Source: Guillardia theta CCMP2712
Lineage: Eukaryota; Protista; Cryptophyta
Length of the DNA: 64,000 nt
NCBI RefSeq assembly: GCF_000315625.1
Contig: NW_005434624.1
Span: 182,559-246,558, forward strand
Direction of reading: 5' to 3'
Shown here: positions 31,838-48,841 of the stretch, one piece after another
Layout: every line of letters starts with the position of its first letter
Position numbering within the stretch: the first letter of the stretch is position 1
Notes under the pieces: generated by a model
The model's input: only the letters and a program-made list of their open reading frames with translations
What the model was told of the DNA's origin: nothing
The model's database searches: none
Program-made: the position numbers and the translations under genes

Positions 31838-34800
31838 TGGAATCGGTTTCCAAGGCAAGCATGGATTTTGCCTTCTCGGGAAGCAGAGCATCTATGAAGA
31901 AGGACGACCTGTCGGAGGTCTCCAACCTCCGCAGGAGCTTGTATGACTTGCAGCAAGACTTGTTCAAAGAGAAAGAGCTCAGGCAAGACTCTGACAGGGA
32001 GCTTCTGAAAGCACTTTCGCTGCTCAAGAAAGTGGTGGTGATGGATGACCCCAACGAATCCAGGCAGAACTTTTCTTCACAGCTCATGGACAGGCAGGTG
32101 GACCATGAGAGAGAGTCCCGTCAACTGCAGGCAAACTTGCAAGCCTGCAAGTGCAAGCTGGAGGCAGTAGAAGCAGAACTGGAGAGGAAGTGTGTTTCGT
32201 ACAATCACTTGGAGGAGACCATGATCCAGTTGAACAAACTGTACGAGCATGAGCAGCATCAGAGGTGTGTTCTCATCCTCATCCTTACCTTGTCACCGTG
32301 AGAGTGCTTCGGTCGCCACTGACATGCTCCGCAGAAAGAAGCTGGAGCAAGACCACAACCTTGTGCTGTCGCAGAGGTCGGGGTTGGAGGACGAGCTTTC
32401 CCGGGCCCGATCGGAATGTGAAGCCTCAGACGCACAGCTGGCTGACCTGCGGGAGGAGATGCGGGAGATCCAGGAGATGCTGTCCCAGGCGGTGAAGGAC
32501 TCGCTGGAGAGGGACGGCGAGCTCAAGAGGAAGGCGAGGGCGTACAAGGCTGAAGTGAAGTCGAAGAGCTCCAAGATCGCGGAGCTCATGGAGGAGAACG
32601 AGAGTCTGTTGGCCAAGGTAGAGGCTATGAAGGAGGAGGAGGAGGCGATGAAGAAGAAGCACCGGAAAGAGCTGGAAAGGCTCCGCGCTAACATGGACGA
32701 GGCGACTGGCAGAATCTCGGAGGAGCTGGAGAGCTGCCAAGACAGACTGAGGAAGGAGGAGGAGCGTAGGAAGAAGCTGCAGTCGACTGTGGAGGAGCTG
32801 AAGGAGTCAGAGTGGCTGAAGAGAGAGATGGAGGAGGAGGTCAGAAACCTAGCGGACACCTTGAGGGAGAAGGACAGGAGGCTGCAAGCTATCCAAGAAA
32901 CGCATGCAAAGCAGAGAAGGAGTGAGGTAGAGAGCATCGCAAAGACGATGCACGAAGAGCACATTTCCCTGCTCAGAGACCAGTGGGCGAAGTCGACTGA
33001 AGGGTTGGACGCCCTGGCGGCCTCGTGCGGTATGTCTGTGTGTGAGGTATGACATTGGCTGAGTTGTACTTCTAGATTTCTTGTCTTCACCTGCCCCATC
33101 CAAACAGAGTTGGGCAGAGCCCAGGAGCAGGTTTGAGGAGTTCTTGAAAGAGTTTCTGGACGCATCGTTGCATCGCTACCTGCTCCTTTTGCGGGATCTG
33201 AAGGGCTCGCACGATAGATTGGTGAGGATTTGATGATAACGACGATGACGATGACAATGACGATGATGATGATGATGATGGTGTTTGTGGCGGTTGTTGT
33301 TGTTGTGGTGGTGGTGGTGGTGGTGATGATGATGATGATGTTATGGTGATGGCTAACTCTCGGAGGTCAGAAGGATGAAAACTCAAGGTTGAAGAGGATG
33401 CTGGAATCGGAGCAGAGCGTCTGTGCTGGGGTGAGTAGGAGGAGACTCCTGCCGGGAGGGCGATGGAACCGTGACCCCAGCGTTGCAGCTGGAGAAGAAA
33501 TTGAAGGAGTTGGAAGGACAGCTGAAGGAGGAGGAGAGCAAGAGTAAAGAAGCACGAGCGGCGATGCTGCAAGAGTTTGAGGTGGGCAGAGGAAAATTCT
33601 CTATCCTCCCTTTCCTTTCTTCCCTTCCCTTCCCCATCTTCCCCTGCACATCCCCTGACCGACGCGCCAGCGGAAGGCGGAGCAAGGGGCTCGAGAGCGG
33701 CGGGAGCTTCAGATGAAAGTCCAGAAGTTCTGCCGACGGTGGAACACTTCAGTATGCTCGCACCTCAAGCCCCGTCTCGCCCTCCTGCGATCATCCTTCT
33801 CCTCCTTCTCTGATGACATCGCCAAGGAGTTTGCAAGCCTCAAGGTGCTCGCGCCCCTGACCCTCCTCCCCTTGGCCTCTTCCTGTCTTGTCCCCCCTCC
33901 CTCCCTCCTTCCTCCTTCTCCTCCCTCCCTCCTCCCTCCTTCCTCCCCTCCCTCCCTCCTCCCTCCTTCTCCCCTCCTCCCTCCTTCCTCCTTCTCCCTC
34001 CCTCCCTCCTCCCTCCTTCTCCCCTCCCTCCCTCCTTCCTTCTTCTCCCCTCCTCCCTCCTTCGCCTGTGTCTTAACGCCCCCCGCTTACCTCCTCCTTC
34101 CACAGGCCGAGCTGACGTTTGCGAGCGGAGCCGTCATTCGCCGAGAGGTGCGCGATGAATGCCCGCCCCATCGCTGATCGAGGGGAGCAGAAGCTGGCAT
34201 CTTCGCAAGTCGAGCAGCAAGCCCAGCTGATCTATCAGGTGAGAAGGGGGTGTCAAGTCTCGGGCCTGCTGAGCAGGGTCACCAGCAAGTACTGTTTGCG
34301 GGTGAGGAGTGCAAGAGGTCGCGCGACCAGCTTGGGAAGGGGCTCAAGGAAGGCGAGTGAGGAGCTGGGAAGGAGGCGGGGCTGACGCCGGCAGCAGGAG
34401 ACTGGACGCAGGCGGCGCAGGCGGCCATGTCGTCATCGCAGGCCAACTTCGAGCACTTCCAGGAGGTGAGGGCGGCTGCTCCGCTCGCGCACGCCTGGGG
34501 CAGGACGGGGCTGGTTCCTGCCCTGCAGCGACTGCCAGTGACACTGACGAGTTCGATGGTCAGATGAGGAGGAGGGGAGAGGAGCTAGAGCAGCTTCAGC
34601 TGGAGCTTGCAGACAGCCGCTCGCTGCTCTTGGCGGCCAACGACGAGGTGGAGAGAGTGAAGCAGCAGCAGCAGCAGCAGCAGCATGCCCGTCAGCAGGA
34701 GCTGGAGCAGGTGAAGGGCGAGCTGAGGGCGGCCAGCAAGCAGCTGGGGACGAGCTCGATGGAACTGCACAAGGCAAGGACGGAGGTGGCGGTGCTGGAG

Positions 34801-36099
34801 GAGAGGAGCTCGCACTTGAGGAGGGAAGTGGAGGAGATGAGGAGGGAGGTGGAGGAGAGGGAGCAGGAGGTGAAGCAGCTGCAAGAGGAGAGGGAGAGTC
34901 TACGTACTCAGGTGGTCAAGGAGTCGAACAAGCAGGAGGAGACGTTCAGGAGGCTGCAGGAGAAGATTGCAGAGCTGCAGGAGGAGAAGGCGAGGAGCTT
35001 ACGGACGGGGCGAGAGCTGGAGGAGGCGAAGGAGGCGGCGAAGACTCTGCGGGCGAGCATGCTGAGCAGGGAGAGTGAGCTTGAAGATGCACAGGAGCGG
35101 TGGGAACGTGCGAGTGAAGAGATTCACCAGCGTCAGAGGCAGGTGGAGGCGCTAGAGGAGGAGTGCTACCGCTACAGGATGCAGGAGGTGGAGTTGCAGT
35201 CAGCGAGGAGGAGCTTGGCTTCAGCTGCTGTGTCGGTCAGGGGCGTGATGAAGGAGCTCGCGCAGATCAGGAGGAGCACGGAAGAGGTCGTGCTGCGGGA
35301 GGAGGAGGAGGGGAGGAGGATGGAGGCACTGGGTGCAGAGCTGCAGCACACGACGAAGAGGGTGGCAGAGGGGACGAGCTGTGTTGGGAGCCTGCTGCTG
35401 GAGTTGAGGGAGGCGCAGAGGCTGGTGGAGGAGGCGAAGGTGAGCACCGGCCGCGATCGGGCAGAGGTGGAGAGGATGATGGGGGAGAGGAGGAGCCTCC
35501 TGCTCAGCATGCATGCGAACAAGCAGACGAGGTCCAAGATGGAGGCTGACATGCAGGAGATGCGGTCGAGCCTGATGCGGCAAGCAGCCAGGGCGCAGGA
35601 GGAGGCGGAGGCGAGGATCCTTCAGCATGAAGAAAGGATACATCAGCTGGTGGAGAGGATACATCAACAGGAGGAGGAGATGCGGGAGCAGGAGGAGAGG
35701 ATCAGCCGACAGGGAAGGGAGTTACGACAGCAGAAGGAGGTGTCGAGTCAAGGAGAGGAAGCGATTCGGGAGCAGGGCAGGGAGATCCGTGAACGAGATG
35801 AGAAGCTCCGCTTGCTGGAGGAGACGATGGGAACCGAGCAGAGGAGGATGAGACAGCTGGAGGAAACTTTGAAACAGCAGGAGGAGGACTTGAAAGGACA
35901 GGAGAAGAAAATGAAACAACAGGAGGAGGAATTGAAGCAGCTGCAACAAGAGCTCTGCTGTGTGCTCGAGCTTGAACCGAGGGTCCAGCACGCTTGCAGC
36001 AGTCTCCTCCTCGTTCAGCGGGCGCTGGGGAGGAGGAGGAAGGAGGAAGCGGAAGTTGTCCTGGAGCTGGTGAGATCTTGTGGGGAGGGTGGAAGGTGA
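31838..36099 (+). CDS. Long coiled-coil protein, multi-exon
   Basis: E/Q/R/K-rich heptad ORFs 31813-32301, 32249-33052 and 34309-36099 joined by introns. Confidence 0.7.
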
Positions 36100-36204
36100 C
36101 GTGCTGCAGGTGGAGAGCACGAGGAGCATCAACAGCGAGATGCGCGTGACCCTTCAGCTCTTGTACGTCTCCATGCTCTGCTCTGCTCCTTCTCCCTTAT
36201 GCTA

Positions 36205-36706
36205 CACTTGCCGCGGGCAGGGAGATTTTGGGGAGGCTCTGCTTCCACCGCGGCATCTTGTAAGGGCGAGAAACGCCGAGCTTGTCTGTCAGTCGTCAGC
36301 AACCCTCCAGCTGTCAGAGGCTCCGCTAACCTTTCGACACGTGCGCGAAGGCTACGAGGAAGTCCTCTAGCAGCAGCTCCCTCTCCTTCCAGCCGCTGCT
36401 GCTCCCGAAACTGAAGCATCGTCAGAGGTGGACTGGGCAAGAGGAGAGTTGGTACATGTGGAGTGAAACTCTCTCCGCAGCATCGCCTTGCTTCAGCCAG
36501 TCCGTGAGCCCCAGGGCGTCCGAGCACGTTCGGTGCTCTTCACATACTGCATGAGATCTTCGAACTTGACGCTCCTGCCCAGGCCCCCCTGGATCTCCTG
36601 GAAGAGGTGGAGCGTGAGGGAGGCTGAGATCTTACTAGGCTTCATGGGAGGCCTGAAGGGGACAACGACCGAGAGCTTGTCTGACGCGCGATCCCCGGTC
36701 AGCATC
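36205..36706 (-). CDS. 3' exons of a hypothetical - strand gene truncated by the gap
   Basis: Spliced segments EIQGGLGRSVKFEDLMQYVK, AMLRREFHST, FGSSSGWKERELLLEDFLVAFAHVS and PYKMPRWKQSLPKISLPAASVA*. Confidence 0.4.
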
Positions 36707-37198
36707 NNNNNNNNNNNNNNNNNNNNNNNNNNNNNNNNNNNNNNNNNNNNNNNNNNNNNNNNNNNNNNNNNNNNNNNNNNNNNNNNNNNNNNNNNNNNNN
36801 NNNNNNNNNNNNNNNNNNNNNNNNNNNNNNNNNNNNNNNNNNNNNNNNNNNNNNNNNNNNNNNNNNNNNNNNNNNNNNNNNNNNNNNNNNNNNNNNNNNN
36901 NNNNNNNNNNNNNNNNNNNNNNNNNNNNNNNNNNNNNNNNNNNNNNNNNNNNNNNNNNNNNNNNNNNNNNNNNNNNNNNNNNNNNNNNNNNNNNNNNNNN
37001 NNNNNNNNNNNNNNNNNNNNNNNNNNNNNNNNNNNNNNNNNNNNNNNNNNNNNNNNNNNNNNNNNNNNNNNNNNNNNNNNNNNNNNNNNNNNNNNNNNNN
37101 NNNNNNNNNNNNNNNNNNNNNNNNNNNNNNNNNNNNNNNNNNNNNNNNNNNNNNNNNNNNNNNNNNNNNNNNNNNNNNNNNNNNNNNNNNNNNNNNNN
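36707..37198. other. Assembly gap (N run)
   Basis: 492 N characters. Confidence 0.99.
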
Positions 37199-37409
37199 GT
37201 CCTTACCACGCCCTCCTTCGCCCTCGCCCCCCCCCCCCCTCCCCTCCCCCCCTTCCTCCTCTTCCTCCTCTCCCTTCACTTCTTCCCTTTCTCCTCCTTC
37301 ACTTGCTTCTCTTCTTCATTTCCCTTCAATCCCTCGTTTCCTGCCCTTCCTTCTCTGATTCCTCTCCGTTTCCTCCTCCTGACTGGCCCTGCCGTCAGTC
37401 TTTCCTTGC

Positions 37410-37490
37410 CCGGGAGAAGTTGCTGAAACTTGAGCTTACGAAAGCCAACGAGGAGATCAACAGGCAAGTTCGGCAGAGTAACGGAGAATG

Positions 37491-37546
<56 letters not shown>

Positions 37547-38960
37547 TTGACTGGCTGGCATCAGGCTCAAGACGCTGGAGGCGATGGAGGAAGGGAAGCT
37601 GAAGAGCCTGCTGGAAGATTTGAAAGAGCTCGAGGTTGCTCAACCCTCCTAATTCATCCTCCTTCCTCCTCTTCATCTCTCCACCTGTCCCCGTAGTTCT
37701 CCTCCCCTTCCCCATCTCCAGCTTCCCCTTCAGCTTGTGTTTCTCTCCTCCTCTTCCTCCTCCACTGTCGCTCATCATCCATGGCAGGACCGCGATGCGA
37801 GTATGAGGGACACTTTCAACTGTATTCTTGAAGAAGTTTCGATCTTAGAGGTCAGAGACTACAAGAACTTTCACTCCTCCTTCGCTTCTTCTTCCATCCC
37901 CTTCTCCACATCCACTCCTTGTTCTTCTCTTCTTGTTCTTTTTCTTCTTCTTCTCCATCATCATAATCATGTTCTTGTTCTTGTTCTTGTTCTTGTTCTT
38001 GTTCTTGTTCTTGTTCTTGTTCTTGTTCTTGTTCTTGTTCTTGTTCATCATCTCTTCCTTCCTGGCCGTTGCCGCCGCGGCCTCCATCTTTCTCCTGACC
38101 TGATCACAGACTCACGAGGAAGCGCTCCAGCAGCACCTGATGGGCGCGATCGACCAGGTGACAACAGCCCAGCAGCACCGTGAACTCTGACGACCCTGCG
38201 CGAAGATCGAGCAGCTGAATCTAGTCAAGGAGGCGCAGGACCATTCCATCAAACACCTCGAAGGGCAGCTGCAGGATCTGACCATGTTGGACTGCAACAT
38301 ACCTTCCATCCTCCTCCTCCTCGCCCTCGCCGCCTCCGGCCCTCCCTCTGTCACTCACTGCCTCCTCCACCTTCGAGCCTGTTGCTCCTCTCCCCACCCC
38401 TGCTTCAGCTCCAGCACATGTTCCTGCTCCCGCCCCTGCCTCTGCTGCCGCTCCCGCTGAACGATTCTTTCAGGTCTCAGTCCCGGATCGAAGAAGAAGA
38501 AGTGAGAATCTCCCGCTGCTCCCGGCTCAGACTGATTATAACCCGCAGAAGAAAGCGAACATCAAGGAAGAGATTGAGAAAGCTGTCAAGGTCTACAAGG
38601 ACGAGCTCAAGGCTGTGCACAGTGAGCCTCCCCTCCGTCCTTCCTTCCCTCCTCCCTTCGTTCCTTGTTCAACTTTCCTGCCATCCCGCTGACCGCGTCC
38701 TCTTCTTCATCACAGAGCTCGTTGCCAAACTGAAAGACCAATATCGATCTGAGATCGAGGCGCTGAAGAAAAGGTTTCATCCTCCACCTTCTCCTCCACC
38801 CCTTGCATCCAACCCCCCCCCCCCTTCTTGCTTCCTTATATCCTTTCTTGACCTCCCTCCCTTCTCCTCCTCCTCCTCCTCCTCCTCCTCCTCCTCCGCC
38901 TCCTCGCCAGCCCCCAATCTCTGTCCTCACAACATCTGACCATTTCTGTCATCAGAGAGC
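37410..38960 (+). CDS. 3' exons of a coiled-coil protein, with microsatellite-rich introns
   Basis: Short exons EKLLKLELTKANEEINRQ, LKTLEAMEEGKLKSLLEDLKELE, DRDASMRDTFNCILEEVSILE and ELVAKLKDQYRSEIEALKKR. Introns contain (GAGCAG)n at ~37492-37545 and (CTTGTT)n at ~37970-38046. Confidence 0.5.
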
Positions 38961-44490: not shown

Positions 44491-45313
44491 ATTCTGACGG
44501 ATCGATCCGGCCTCTGAGAGGAGCATGGCGGGTCAAGGGCGAGCAGGCATGAGAAGCGAGAGGAAGGAAGATGCGCTTGTTGAGAGCTCTGGATGGAAGC
44601 AGACGCTTGTTCATGGCAATCTACTAACATGGATAGGAAGGAAGTGAGGAGGAGGAGATGTGGACAGATGCTGGAATGGAGGAACTTAAATGTTTTGTTG
44701 GGACGATTGGTCGAGATGACCGCTTTCAATGTCCTGTTCTCGGTGGCCAGCCATGGGCATTACATGAGTCTTGGACGAAGCTATGGCTGAAAACCTGAGA
44801 TAGTGACATCGAGCTTGTGACCTTGTCCGATCAAGCACCGAGGGCGGAAAAACAGTGTTTAGCAGAAGGCACATGGTTGTCTTGAGAGTATGGGATGATT
44901 TCTTAGAATCAAACATCGAAGATCAGCAGATATGTCGGCACGCCATGAATTTATTGAATGTTTCTGTTTCGTAGAGAAGGGGGACATTCAGGTTGTCATT
45001 ATAATAGTGAGTTTGTAGTCGATTCATGAGATGCATAAGACTACTCATACGAACAGGTTTGAAGCTTTAACAAGTAAGGGGAGAGAGTCCAAACATCCAT
45101 GTGTATATGTCAGGTGATGCCAATTTGTTTTCAATGAAATGCTAGTGCAACAAATGTTCATCGAGGGGTTATGCATACAACAGAGAAAAGGGGCACTGCA
45201 ATGAGTATATTGGGCAGCGCGATCGTAGCATTTGTTAACAGGAGACCATCTGGTTGAACATATACTCACTAAGACAATCTCACAAAAATTGAGTGTTCTG
45301 ACGACCTGTGCAG

Positions 45314-46870
45314 ATGATGAAGCGAGTTGTCGTCTTGCAGGGCCTTTTGGCTATTACGGCAACGGTTTCAGCGTTTGCTCCGTATTCCGCCTTGCCCAAA
45401 CCTCTTTCTCCTGCGCTCCATGCTCGTTCGCTCCGATCTTCAAACACTGTGAGGCTTGCTGGATTGAAAATGAGTGAGAATGGAGAGGGCAAGAGGGGAT
45501 CTCTCTTGGGCAAAGCAGCTGCTTTCACTGCTGCTGCTACCATTGCCTTCTCTGGTGGAGCGATGGCTTCCTTCAAGGGCAATGATGCTTTGTCCAAGAA
45601 CGGCGACAACTCCGAGCTCGTCGCCTACTCTGCTGGTTGACCTCGCAGATTCGTGGTGTTGTTATGTTGAATCTTTGGCACAGACTCGTCCAGCGGCAAG
45701 AAGAAGTCCAACCCTTTGAGGTCCTTCCTTAAGGGAGGTTCGAATGTACTTGAATGGTCAACACCATTTCTTTAACTCGTCGGCTGTCAGGAATATCTGC
45801 TACTATCTCCAAGACTGCGGTTGCACCCATTGAGCGCATCAAGCTCCTCCTCCAGGTTTAAGATCAGATCGGGTGACAACAAGCGACTGACTGCATGAGG
45901 CAGGTGCAAGCTACTTCCACTCAGATCACCGATCCCTACAAGGGCATCGTAGATTGTGCCGTCCGTGTGTACAAGGAGCAGGGAGCTCTCGCATTCTGGA
46001 GAGGTGAGCAAAACTGGAATATCAACTGGCTTGTTGAATGCCAATCCAGGAAACACTGCCAACATCCTCAGATACTTCCCTACCCAGGCTCTCAACTTTG
46101 CTTTCAAGGACAAGTACAAGGAGATGTTCTGCAGGCCTGCTGAGGAGGTCTGTGCACACATGCAGTCGATTTGTTGTTTGACATGTTCTTCACAGGTCGG
46201 ATTCTGGTTGTTCTTCCTTGGAAACTTGGCTGCTGGTGGAGCTGCTGGTGCTACTTCCCTCCTCTTCGTCTATCCTCTGGACTTCGCTCGTACCCGCCTC
46301 GGCGCTGACGTTGGCAAGTCCAAGGAGGACAGGCAGTTCAACGGCCTTTTCGACTGCATTGCCAAGATCTACAAGTCTGATGGCATCGGTGGATTGTACC
46401 AGGGATTTGCTGCTTCCATCCTGGGAATCATCGTGTACCGTGCTGCATTCTTCGGTGGGTTTGATACTCTCAAGGCTGTCCTGATGAAGGTTGGATTCGG
46501 CGCTGTTGTCTGGCAGGTCAAGTTCTTTGTGGGTTTGCATGGTGACACAACTGACTGTTTATCTAGGCGTTCCTCGTTGCCGAGTTCACTACTGCTGTTG
46601 CTGGAATCATCTCTTACCCCTTCGATACCGTTCGTCGCCGCCTTATGATGAAGTCTGGCGGAGGCTCTACCATCCAGTACAAGGGAACCATCGACTGCGC
46701 TGTGCAGATCGTCAAGCAGGAGGGAGTCGGCGGGTTGTTCAAGGGCTCTCTTTCCAACGTCTTCCGTGGGACTGGAGCTGCTTTGGTGAGAGAAAAGTTC
46801 TGCTGTCAAGTCTGTTGCTAACCCCTGCCAGGTGCTCGTCCTCTATGACTGGCTCTCCAAGTTCATCTAA
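45314..46870 (+). CDS. AAC: ADP/ATP carrier (mitochondrial carrier family, AAC/ANT type) with ER signal + SAFAP transit presequence
   Basis: Spliced [63 protein letters not shown] and [12 protein letters not shown] (AAC signature). N-terminus [22 protein letters not shown]. Confidence 0.92.
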
Positions 46871-47127
46871 GAGGATATAGCTGACTTGCTAACATGAGGA
46901 TTCAATAAAGGCTGATAGCAAGACCTCCCAGACAAACATGCAATGATAGGTTTATTCACTCAAGAAGGAATAGATACTTCGAGCTTGCGGAATAATCTTG
47001 CATAGACAACGAGGTACACTTCAAATTTCCCTCGCGATCAGTGGAGGACAGAGATGTCCTGACGATTCAAATCTCCTCAAGGCAATCCTCACTTCTTAAC
47101 TGCTGCAATTTCGTGTCACAAACAACA

Positions 47128-48841
47128 TCAAGGACTGCTCAGATAGACACCTGAGGCTACGCATTGCTTAGCCTCGGCCTCCCCGGCAACCTGTTCCATC
47201 GCGTCAGTTCCAGATTCAACCTCCTTCAACTCCTTACAGGGATTCCGAAAAATCGCTTGATAGAGTCGTAGATGAGGAATTGGGCAACAATGTAGGATGT
47301 GACGTGTACACATCGAGCTCCAGCTCCAAGGTAAAGCCCTCGGGGTCCCAACTGTGCAGAAGGAACAAGAAAACATCATCCAGGGACAGATAAGCAGTGT
47401 CCTCTGTCACCTGCTTGATGGCTCCCAGAACGGTGGTTCCAGGCGCTTTGTTCATAACAGACAACACAGTGTCTCCCGGCTACCAGCCCGTGAGACGCAT
47501 ACGCCGTAATCGAAAGCAAAGAGCGGAACCTGTGAAACCAGCGACGCCGTGATTCCTGAAATGAGCCCACATCCCAAAGTCACAGCCGTTCCCACAGTAG
47601 AAGATGCATCCTAAAAAAAAATCAGAAAGAAACTTAGGAGGATAGAACCATACCTTGATGTCAGCCTTGGCAAGCGCAGAATAAACTGCTTTGGCAGCAA
47701 ACTCGTACACCAAGAATTGAGTGATGGTGAAGGGAACTTGCTTGCATTGAATCGGCAAGTACCCACCATAGATTCCACCCAACCCCTTTAGGTCTCTTAC
47801 AAAAAGCTCACAACCCAACAGAAGCTACCTGGGTCTTAACTAGCTTTGCCAGAACTCCAAACATGTTGTTGGCGAACTTGGGATCAGCCACCTTTTGTGC
47901 AAGTCAAGGAAAACGACCCTCCATCAAGGTTTTGGCACCATTCTGATTCGCGCAGATTCGAATGGAAGCAATGCGGTGGTTCCAAGAATCTATACTCCAT
48001 GAGCGGCGTCTCCAAGGACATATACTCTGAAGATACCTCAGCTGCAGACGCTGCAATGATCATTTGGGGGATGGGAAGCTTGCCGCCCTCCTTGAACAAA
48101 GGCGTCAGAAACCTGAGATGACCAGGGGATCAAGCTCACTCCACGCTTCTCGGGAGGCAAACTCTGGGCTAGACTGTCCTTGAAGAACTCATAAAATCCA
48201 TATCTGAAGTTATCACCGTCAAGGTCATGGAAAACGCTGCAAGAAGAGAACTGACTTCAATGCTCCTTGCATCAAAAATCCACAGAACGTCGGAGTCATA
48301 CCCTGCATCAGTCCTCGTGTGCCTTCTTTCTAGAGGAGGAGCCTCAAGTCAGACGCAGGATGAGCTGAGTCACCCTCCTATCAAACCTCATAGATCTTGC
48401 GGATGCCTTCGTTGAGAGAGGAGAACTCCCCAGGATTCACCTGGATGAGAGGTCATGACGTGGACCCTCGTCCTCCTGCAGCACCTGCAGCCTCGTCTTG
48501 ACGACATCAAGTGGGACCGTCACCAAGTGCGTGAGGGATGCGCAGAAGCCTCCGGCAGCAAACAGCTTCGGATACTTCTCAAAGTCCATCTTGGAGGCGA
48601 CAGCCTTGGCCACCGCCGCCTTTGCCATGTGGAATCTTTCTCCCAGGTTTGCCTTATTCAATTGCTGAGGAAAATTCAAGATGCTATTGGCGTCTTGAGA
48701 TCGTGATTTCAATCCGAGGAAGCCCGCATCGGGGTTCCCCAGCGGGAAGGACATGGTACCCGCGCAGTAGGCATATTGCGCGAAGAACAGGGCGGCGGAG
48801 ATGATCCTCAACGAGAGATGCGAGAAAGCACGCATCCTCAT
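47128..48841 (-). CDS. Phosphate carrier (mitochondrial carrier family, PiC/Mir1/SLC25A3 type) with N-terminal signal-peptide-like extension
   Basis: AGGFCASLTHLVTVPLDVVKTRLQ, YGFYEFFK, LPFESARIRMV, KQVPFTITQFLVYE, PGDTVLS and QFLIYDSIKRFFGIP are phosphate-carrier motifs. Confidence 0.85.

Follow-up and report, generated by a model that had tools for sequence, protein, structure and literature searches.

The stretch of DNA analysed here, referred to as the window, comprises 64,000 nucleotides of the nuclear scaffold JH993014.1 of the cryptophyte Guillardia theta CCMP2712 (assembly GCA_000315625.1), and our subject is a gene on its forward strand that encodes an ADP/ATP carrier (AAC) preceded by a long N-terminal extension. 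The coding sequence runs from an ATG at 45314 to a TAA at 46868-46870 (window coordinates are used throughout, and all features of this gene lie on the + strand) and specifies a product of 405 residues. It is divided into eight exons (45314-45635, 45684-45737, 45791-45855, 45904-46003, 46050-46147, 46196-46516, 46567-46785 and 46832-46870), the ends of which were anchored on GT-AG sites and on motifs; the seven introns between them are all of the GT-AG type and measure only 46-53 bp. The best database match of the carrier exons is the public gene model GUITHDRAFT_73589 (P0001).

The exon structure is matched by a transcript contig, L002 (JGI 3300017164 / MMETSP), a polyadenylated sequence of 1,340 nt that blastn aligns to the window with 0 mismatches. 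Every coding exon is present in it as an exact substring, in consecutive positions, and a per-junction test gave exact 30-nt matches for 7/7 of the coding junctions. The transcript joins an extension of 121 residues to a complete AAC, so that the in-frame splicing proposed from the genomic sequence (YSA…GISAT), i.e. the linkage of a presequence exon to the carrier, is borne out. The extent of the gene in the original prediction, 45314-46870, holds for all the coding elements and has to be amended on the 5′ side. There, blastn of L002 against the window and the junction test place a leader exon at about 45056-45113, followed by a leader intron of 200 bp (45114-45313; a gap in the alignment of L002, with GT at 45114-45115 and AG at 45312-45313), which is four times as long as the introns between the coding exons. 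The leader exon contains an in-frame ATG at 45099-45101 that adds five residues, MCICQ, before MMKR; the open reading frame of L002, designated P0126, starts MCICQMMKRVV. A signal peptide is predicted whichever ATG is used, the one at 45099 or the one at 45314. At the other end, the poly(A) run of L002 begins after ...GATAGCAAGA, and the 3′ untranslated region (46871-46923) carries an AATAAA at 46904-46909, with the poly(A) site at about 46922-46923.

The public model tells a different story. P0001 (292 residues) is without exons 1 and 2: its start ATG, at 45754, lies inside intron 2, and its product begins with 12 intron-derived residues, after which comes GISAT, so that none of the presequence is left and helix 1 lacks its beginning. 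A plastid-targeting screen run on P0001 would therefore be blind to the presequence. Our literature search, which did not cover every journal, found no paper on this gene or on any AAC-type plastid carrier in cryptophytes, probably because the reference annotation cuts off the informative part. One could take the public model, which has no extension, together with the high similarity of the carrier to mitochondrial AACs, as a sign that the gene specifies an ordinary mitochondrial AAC and that the extension arose from faulty annotation or assembly, or is a leader that is not translated. However, this model starts within an intron and lacks part of helix 1, and the in-frame joining of the exons in L002 speaks against such a view; the comparison with other organisms, to which we come below, does so as well.

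The carrier domain

The carrier domain corresponds to residues 122-405 of the 405-residue model, encoded by exons 2-8 (45725-46870) and interrupted by introns at 45738-45790, 45856-45903, 46004-46049, 46148-46195, 46517-46566 and 46786-46831; it was delimited from Pfam matches, the alignment with the bovine AAC1 structure (1okc), an AlphaFold model and the transcript junctions. An exon-by-exon hmmscan (E up to 0.1), which left out exon 2 and the short last exon, matched a single family, PF00153 (Mito_carr), on five exons. The second and third Mito_carr repeats each reach the curated cutoff alone (88.9 bits, E = 1.9e-25, and 59.1 bits, E = 3.7e-16, respectively); the first is split across exons 3-5, which score 17-22.8 bits each, at or under that cutoff. 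Residues 124-410 of P0126 are collinear with residues 8-297 of bovine AAC1, over its full length (E = 2e-112), and the next matches are the yeast Aac3 and Aac2 structures (4c9j, 2.6e-90; 4c9g, 9.5e-90) and the AAC of Thermothelomyces (6gci, 6.3e-86). In the AlphaFold model of P0126, residues 119-410 form a six-helix carrier with its matrix helices (pLDDT 70-89), the transmembrane helices being 123-156, 187-212, 221-256, 289-317, 323-352 and 386-409. The preceding residues 1-118 have a pLDDT below 50 and contain two isolated helices (3-24 and 68-94), with a disordered spacer.

The motifs are those of the AAC subfamily. The Px[DE]xx[KR] motifs on helices H1, H3 and H5 read PIERIK, PLDFAR and PFDTVR, and the AAC motifs RRRLMM, RYFPTQ, GIIVYR and [FWY][KRQ]G are all found in the G. 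theta carrier; SKT, RYFPTQ, FARTRL, GIIVYR, RRR and FRGTG align with their bovine counterparts, and these include the conserved basic and aromatic residues that we take to form the pocket of AACs. In an alignment of 42 AAC sequences, R348-R350 and M352-M353 (P0126 numbering) are invariant, most sequences have leucine at the fourth position of the signature, and the identity between the G. theta carrier and ordinary AACs about 300 residues long is 56-67%. All the sequence tests place the carrier in the AAC subfamily, and the canonical AAC with an RRRLMM signature that had been recognised in the translation alone is confirmed by both the Pfam and the 1okc matches. The three Mito_carr repeats and the signature motifs are shared with the mitochondrial AACs or ANTs (SLC25A4-6; 1okc and the yeast 4c9g and 4c9j), which, in contrast, have nothing comparable to the extension of 121 residues. 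An ordinary mitochondrial AAC of G. theta was not among the best 120 of the 7,927 database matches.

The N-terminal extension and its conservation

The extension was parsed by rules that cover 10 orthologues and succeeded for 10/10 of them; a third, more divergent group of sequences was parsed by eye. Hydropathy is on the Kyte-Doolittle scale, and the signal-peptide measure is the best window of nine residues (maxKD9). The first part, residues 1-20 of the 405-residue model (45314-45373), is a putative signal peptide with predicted cleavage at VSA/F, as judged from the translation, the hydropathy and the orthologues. Its maxKD9 is 2.47; in the 10 orthologues the signal peptides are 12-25 residues long, end in VSA or ASA followed by F, and have a best window of 2.0-3.3. 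Position +1 is a phenylalanine in G. theta and in all the orthologues whose N-terminus is intact; in the alignment, the one departure from F26 (P0126 numbering) comes from a fragment that is truncated at its 5′ end.

The second part, residues 21-52 (45374-45469), has the composition of a transit peptide: it is rich in Ser, Arg and Leu, has a net charge of +5, contains no Asp or Glu and ends at AGLK/M. The corresponding segments of the 10 orthologues are 31-35 residues long, with a net charge of +3 to +5 and 0 D/E, and their ends conform to L/M-[KRQ]/M-[SNA]-[EAD] in 10/10 sequences, acidic residues thus appearing after the Met. L53, G55 and L56 (P0126 numbering) are nearly invariant, and M58 (M53 of the 405-residue model) is invariant in 12/12 aligned sequences. 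Cleavage of diatom transit peptides is described as following Ala or Ser at -3, Leu at -2 and a charged or small residue at -1, the next residue being Ala, Ser or a Met that is later removed, with a net negative charge beyond; this consensus is said to be common to other algae with complex plastids (PMC3774753) and has been applied to G. theta itself (PMC5784005).

A methionine conserved to this degree invites another explanation, namely that translation may be initiated at M53 (45470), or that the protein is dually targeted, an ATP carrier of the endoplasmic reticulum (ER) or chloroplast-ER being made beside or instead of the plastid form. The segment that follows this Met has the n-h-c layout of a signal peptide and resembles an ER signal or anchor, and AAC-like carriers are known in the plant ER (ER-ANT1). 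Leu at -2, Lys or Arg at -1 and Met at +1 are, however, just what the published transit-peptide consensus leads one to expect (PMC3774753), and the only G. theta transcript seen has the full upstream open reading frame, with two or three earlier in-frame ATGs. Moreover, the upstream signal peptide, the phenylalanine and the acid-free transit peptide are kept by selection in every group. Initiation at M53 therefore appears very unlikely to us.

The third part, residues 53-85 (15 + 18 residues; 45470-45568), was delimited with the orthologue parse and by its 18-residue hydrophobic section; the isolated helix at 68-94 of the AlphaFold model of P0126 corresponds to it. It has an acidic start, then a basic patch directly before an Ala-rich hydrophobic stretch of 18 residues, and closes with A-x-A. 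In the 10 orthologues the mean hydropathy of the 18-residue stretch is 1.4-1.8, and positions -3/-1 are A/A or V/A in 10/10. None of the 10 parsed orthologues has a twin arginine (RR) in the n-region of this domain which, if it is lumen-targeting, would be of the Sec/SRP or the spontaneous type. A hydrophilic spacer, residues 86-121 (45569-45724, i.e. the end of exon 1, intron 1 at 45636-45683 and the beginning of exon 2), leads to the carrier; in the orthologues it has 33-41 residues before the FLKGG of carrier helix 1 and a mean hydropathy of -0.2 to -1.1.

A parallel is found in G. theta itself. The precursors of the phycoerythrin alpha subunits share the signal peptide ending in AXA and followed by F or Y, the Leu or Met at -2, often the Met at +1, and a hydrophobic lumen domain ending in AXA (PMC5784005). 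They differ in that their lumen domain is of the Tat type, with RR, and precedes a soluble protein, whereas here RR is absent and a six-helix membrane carrier follows; the hydrophobic stretch of the AAC extension is, in addition, unusually conserved. The sequence evidence supports a description of the extension as three successive parts fitting the published rules for a signal peptide, a transit peptide and a lumen-targeting domain. The original prediction had read it in the same way: the signal peptide ending VSA-FAP is seen in the exon translation, with a rule-based small-x-A/F pattern that is conserved; the Ser/Arg/Leu-rich transit peptide proved to be basic, acid-free and situated at the published cleavage consensus; and the part said to resemble a thylakoid transfer signal, with basic residues, a hydrophobic stretch and A-x-A, is present up to 45568 and conserved in 10/10 orthologues. 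The observation is thus confirmed, and its interpretation is supported at the level of sequence.

The layout of the extension is common to G. theta and three groups of sequences, i.e. orthologues of 395-400 residues from transcript contigs (group 1), a second group, and a third one on metagenomic contigs. Chance can be excluded as its source because the whole architecture is conserved in orthologues. Conservation is uneven along the protein: between G. theta and group 1, identity is 85-87% in the carrier, 38-44% in the transit peptide and 33-36% in the spacer, and it reaches 89-94% in the third domain's hydrophobic stretch. Scored against 1.84 billion representative proteins with E up to 0.001, a profile of the extension only (alignment A3, without carrier residues) found 13 proteins, the recognisable ones being fragments or members that bear the same extension. 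One of them, P0242, runs on into a full carrier; P0246 and P0247 make up the third, more divergent group, the motif of which, ASASA/FAP…LQM/…KRQQVLAKLAVLTVAATLACSGGAMA, has the same succession of signal peptide with F, transit peptide and signal-like domain. On a genomic contig (L018:2215-4360; ENA ERZ27315277, k141_165409), AAC exons lie downstream of a third-group extension exon on the same strand, and these downstream exons encode a 35-residue stretch and FWRGNTANIIRYFPTQ. The profile matches P0250 (1,098 residues) in repeated short stretches only. In P0248 (272 residues), unrelated sequence comes after a degenerate group-2 extension in which F is absent at +1 and the hydrophobic stretch is interrupted; a pseudogene, an assembly chimaera or a wrongly called gene may account for this protein.

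In a tree of 73 sequences (IQ-TREE quick, LG+C20), the AACs with the extension group together as one clade (SH-aLRT 100), which has a stem of 0.86 changes per column and is placed in a poorly supported group with the red alga Cyanidium and oomycetes; from these sequences, an origin in the host and one in the red-algal endosymbiont are both conceivable. At eighteen positions the clade has a fixed residue that is rare in other AACs, and these substitutions, like the long stem, set the G. theta protein apart from mitochondrial AACs. A case in point is the residue directly after RRR[LM]MM: a Gln in 106/106 other AACs, it is a Lys in 8/8 extension-bearing carriers compared (position 354 of P0126, window ~46651-46653). 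Both the long separate stem and the occurrence of the extension, in frame, in independent transcript contigs and in genomic contigs run counter to the idea of an ordinary mitochondrial AAC. The reading of the extension as an artefact was rejected on the transcript and conservation evidence, and we regard an ordinary mitochondrial carrier with such a spurious or untranslated leader as extremely improbable.

Destination and possible role of the carrier

We propose that G. theta possesses an AAC-type carrier retargeted into its four-membrane plastid, most likely into the thylakoid membrane, with lumenal termini and an exchange of stromal ATP for lumenal ADP. Our estimate of the probability of this proposal as a whole is about 0.48; the thylakoid location, which is the best reading of the destination, has about one chance in two, and it is highly probable on sequence grounds that an AAC-type protein is plastid-targeted at all. 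The signal peptide would bring the nascent chain into the ER and be cut off at VSA/F, and the basic, acid-free transit peptide thus exposed, beginning with F, would take the protein through the periplastidial membrane and the two membranes of the envelope. A stromal peptidase would then cut at AGLK/M (K52/M53), and the newly exposed third domain (basic patch, Ala-rich stretch, AMA/S) would direct insertion into the thylakoid by a Sec/SRP/Alb3-type or a spontaneous route. With its basic patch remaining in the stroma, the spacer would cross into the lumen and the N-terminus of carrier helix 1 would lie there, so that both termini and the 'cytoplasmic' face would be lumenal and the 'matrix' face stromal; cleavage of the third domain, or its retention as an additional N-terminal helix, would make no difference to this. 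The lumen being the positive side, the carrier would be oriented with respect to the positive and negative sides just as it is in mitochondria. Given this orientation and the electrogenic exchange of ATP4- for ADP3-, stromal ATP would therefore be moved into the lumen, and ADP back.

The evidence from the signal peptide and the F-type transit peptide fits equally well a carrier of the plastid inner envelope, in which the third domain would act, after import into the stroma, as a re-insertion (conservative-sorting) signal. The termini would then be in the intermembrane space, and the argument from topology is equally valid, since the N-terminus would again be on the outer, positive side; photosynthetic ATP would be exported towards the periplastidial compartment, and the exchange could reverse in darkness. 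This compartment houses the nucleomorph, 80S ribosomes, a proteasome and import ATPases, and it has no mitochondrion. That it needs ATP is clear from the description there of a 26S proteasome and of replication and helicase factors (PMC6559170). A phosphate-carrier-like protein encoded by the neighbouring gene (see below), which has a signal peptide without an aromatic residue at +1, could be a partner on the periplastidial side. But the plastid transporters for which reviews give presequence types, the diatom NTTs, have no presequence, a signal peptide only, a bipartite or a periplastid-type one, and none is tripartite (PMC6995639); and the precedent in G. theta for a signal-like third domain ending in AXA is lumen targeting (PMC5784005). 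An exporter in the inner envelope is, in our opinion, the chief alternative to a thylakoid carrier, though an unlikely one.

Another membrane of the complex plastid or of the secretory system, such as the periplastidial membrane or the outer envelope, might also be the final site; in a polytopic membrane protein, the F at +1 and the third domain would then have another meaning than the rules assign to them. The targeting rules come mostly from soluble proteins, transfer could be stopped early by the hydrophobic helices of the carrier, and the neighbouring phosphate-carrier-like protein is an instance of a mitochondrial-family carrier on a secretory or plastid route with other signals. However, all groups have kept the F at +1, the acid-free transit peptide and the cleavage motif alike, which is hard to explain if they are unused, and such a destination seems distinctly improbable.

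A thylakoid location, which we still prefer, has several points to its disadvantage. It is deduced from the sequence. We know of no precedent for a mitochondrial-family carrier that is brought into thylakoids by a cleavable lumen-type signal, nor of a lumenal consumer of ATP in cryptophytes. For a disposable signal, it is odd that the third domain's hydrophobic stretch should be conserved like the carrier; this stretch may be kept as an extra helix or be bound by a specific partner. A second, mitochondrial role of the gene is still formally conceivable. Finally, the thylakoid role of the plant analogue, TAAC, is disputed, this protein being also a transporter of 3′-phosphoadenosine 5′-phosphosulfate (PAPS) in the envelope (PMC3928508).

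The comparison with TAAC (TAAC/PAPST1, At5g01500, of Arabidopsis) is nevertheless the obvious one, for both proteins are members of the mitochondrial-carrier family, and TAAC has been proposed to bring ATP from the stroma into the lumen against ADP; in the plant lumen model, TAAC imports ATP and PHT4;1 exports phosphate (PMC3928508). TAAC has a dual envelope and thylakoid location and is reported for green algae and land plants only, not for red or brown algae or diatoms (PMC5948301, PMC3928508). Orthology with TAAC is not supported: the published description (~30% identity to AACs, green lineage only; PMC3928508, PMC5948301) is incompatible with a match to AAC1 at E = 2e-112. The G. theta carrier, by contrast, is an AAC proper that bears a tripartite signal, so that a role in common would be convergent. 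The NTTs have in common with it the exchange of ATP and ADP in plastids, which is predicted here, and are unrelated in fold and family; two of the diatom NTTs, NTT1 and NTT6, carry bipartite signals of the ASAFAP type (PMC6995639). Membership of the NTT (TLC) family was rejected, PF00153 being the only family matched in the hmmscan described above. A further comparison is with the diatom plastid-envelope carrier MCFc (Phatr3_J46742), a mitochondrial-carrier family protein with an ASAFind-type presequence, located at the plastid periphery and with cryptophyte homologues (bioRxiv 10.1101/2025.02.14.638225). By its description it is set apart from the G. theta carrier, as it belongs to another orthogroup, its motifs diverge from those of AACs and no third targeting domain is described.

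Reviews assign plastid ATP transport to the NTTs, which red-lineage plastids use in the envelope, and to TAAC, a thylakoid ATP/ADP carrier being known in green plants only (PMC5948301, PMC3928508); an AAC in a plastid would thus be as unusual as first supposed, and the present gene suggests an unreported way to move ATP inside red-type plastids. An AAC that is canonical, readily assayed and furnished with a conserved three-step plastid address would provide a molecular handle on ATP traffic in a four-membrane plastid, whether the beneficiary is the lumen or the periplastidial compartment, where mitochondria are lacking. The protein would also be an example of a six-helix carrier that is re-addressed with its orientation to the membrane potential kept. 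An ATP route into the lumen, if it exists, would mean that ATP-dependent reactions take place in the compartment where, uniquely, the phycobiliprotein antenna of cryptophytes resides. At this stage we may only put forward tentatively, and with some doubt, a broader scheme in which cryptophytes have a dedicated route of this sort by way of an AAC with a tripartite signal, independent of the green TAAC, the hydrophobic segment perhaps being a seventh helix and the adjacent phosphate-carrier-like gene perhaps serving for phosphate in an energy shuttle of the plastid or periplastid that is made up of mitochondrial carriers.

The neighbouring gene and other features of the window

The neighbour just mentioned is convergent with the AAC gene. 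It extends over ~47089-48841 on the - strand, with exon 1 at 48437-48841, and encodes a phosphate-carrier (SLC25A3)-like protein of 388 residues. Its named close relatives are all from cryptophytes (Hanusia, Hemiselmis, Rhodomonas), and the next matches are at ≤40% identity. All the full-length members have a signal-peptide-like start and an extension of 70-100 residues, without an aromatic residue at +1. A signal peptide lacking the aromatic residue is thought to indicate periplastidial targeting (PMC6995639), and the sequence of the neighbour suggests a periplastid or ER route for it. A metagenome scan with its exon 1 returned orthologues only, and no G. theta transcript. Two adjacent carrier genes are thus both equipped with secretory-type signals.

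Elsewhere in the window, simple repeats are found at 33891-34063 (a (TCCC)n or CT-rich array), 37491-37546 ((AGGAGC)9) and 37918-38057 ((CTTCTT)n). A 2-kb block of low G+C content (36001-38000; 0.42, against 0.50-0.62 elsewhere) adjoins a block at 34-36 kb that is G+C-rich and strongly skewed.

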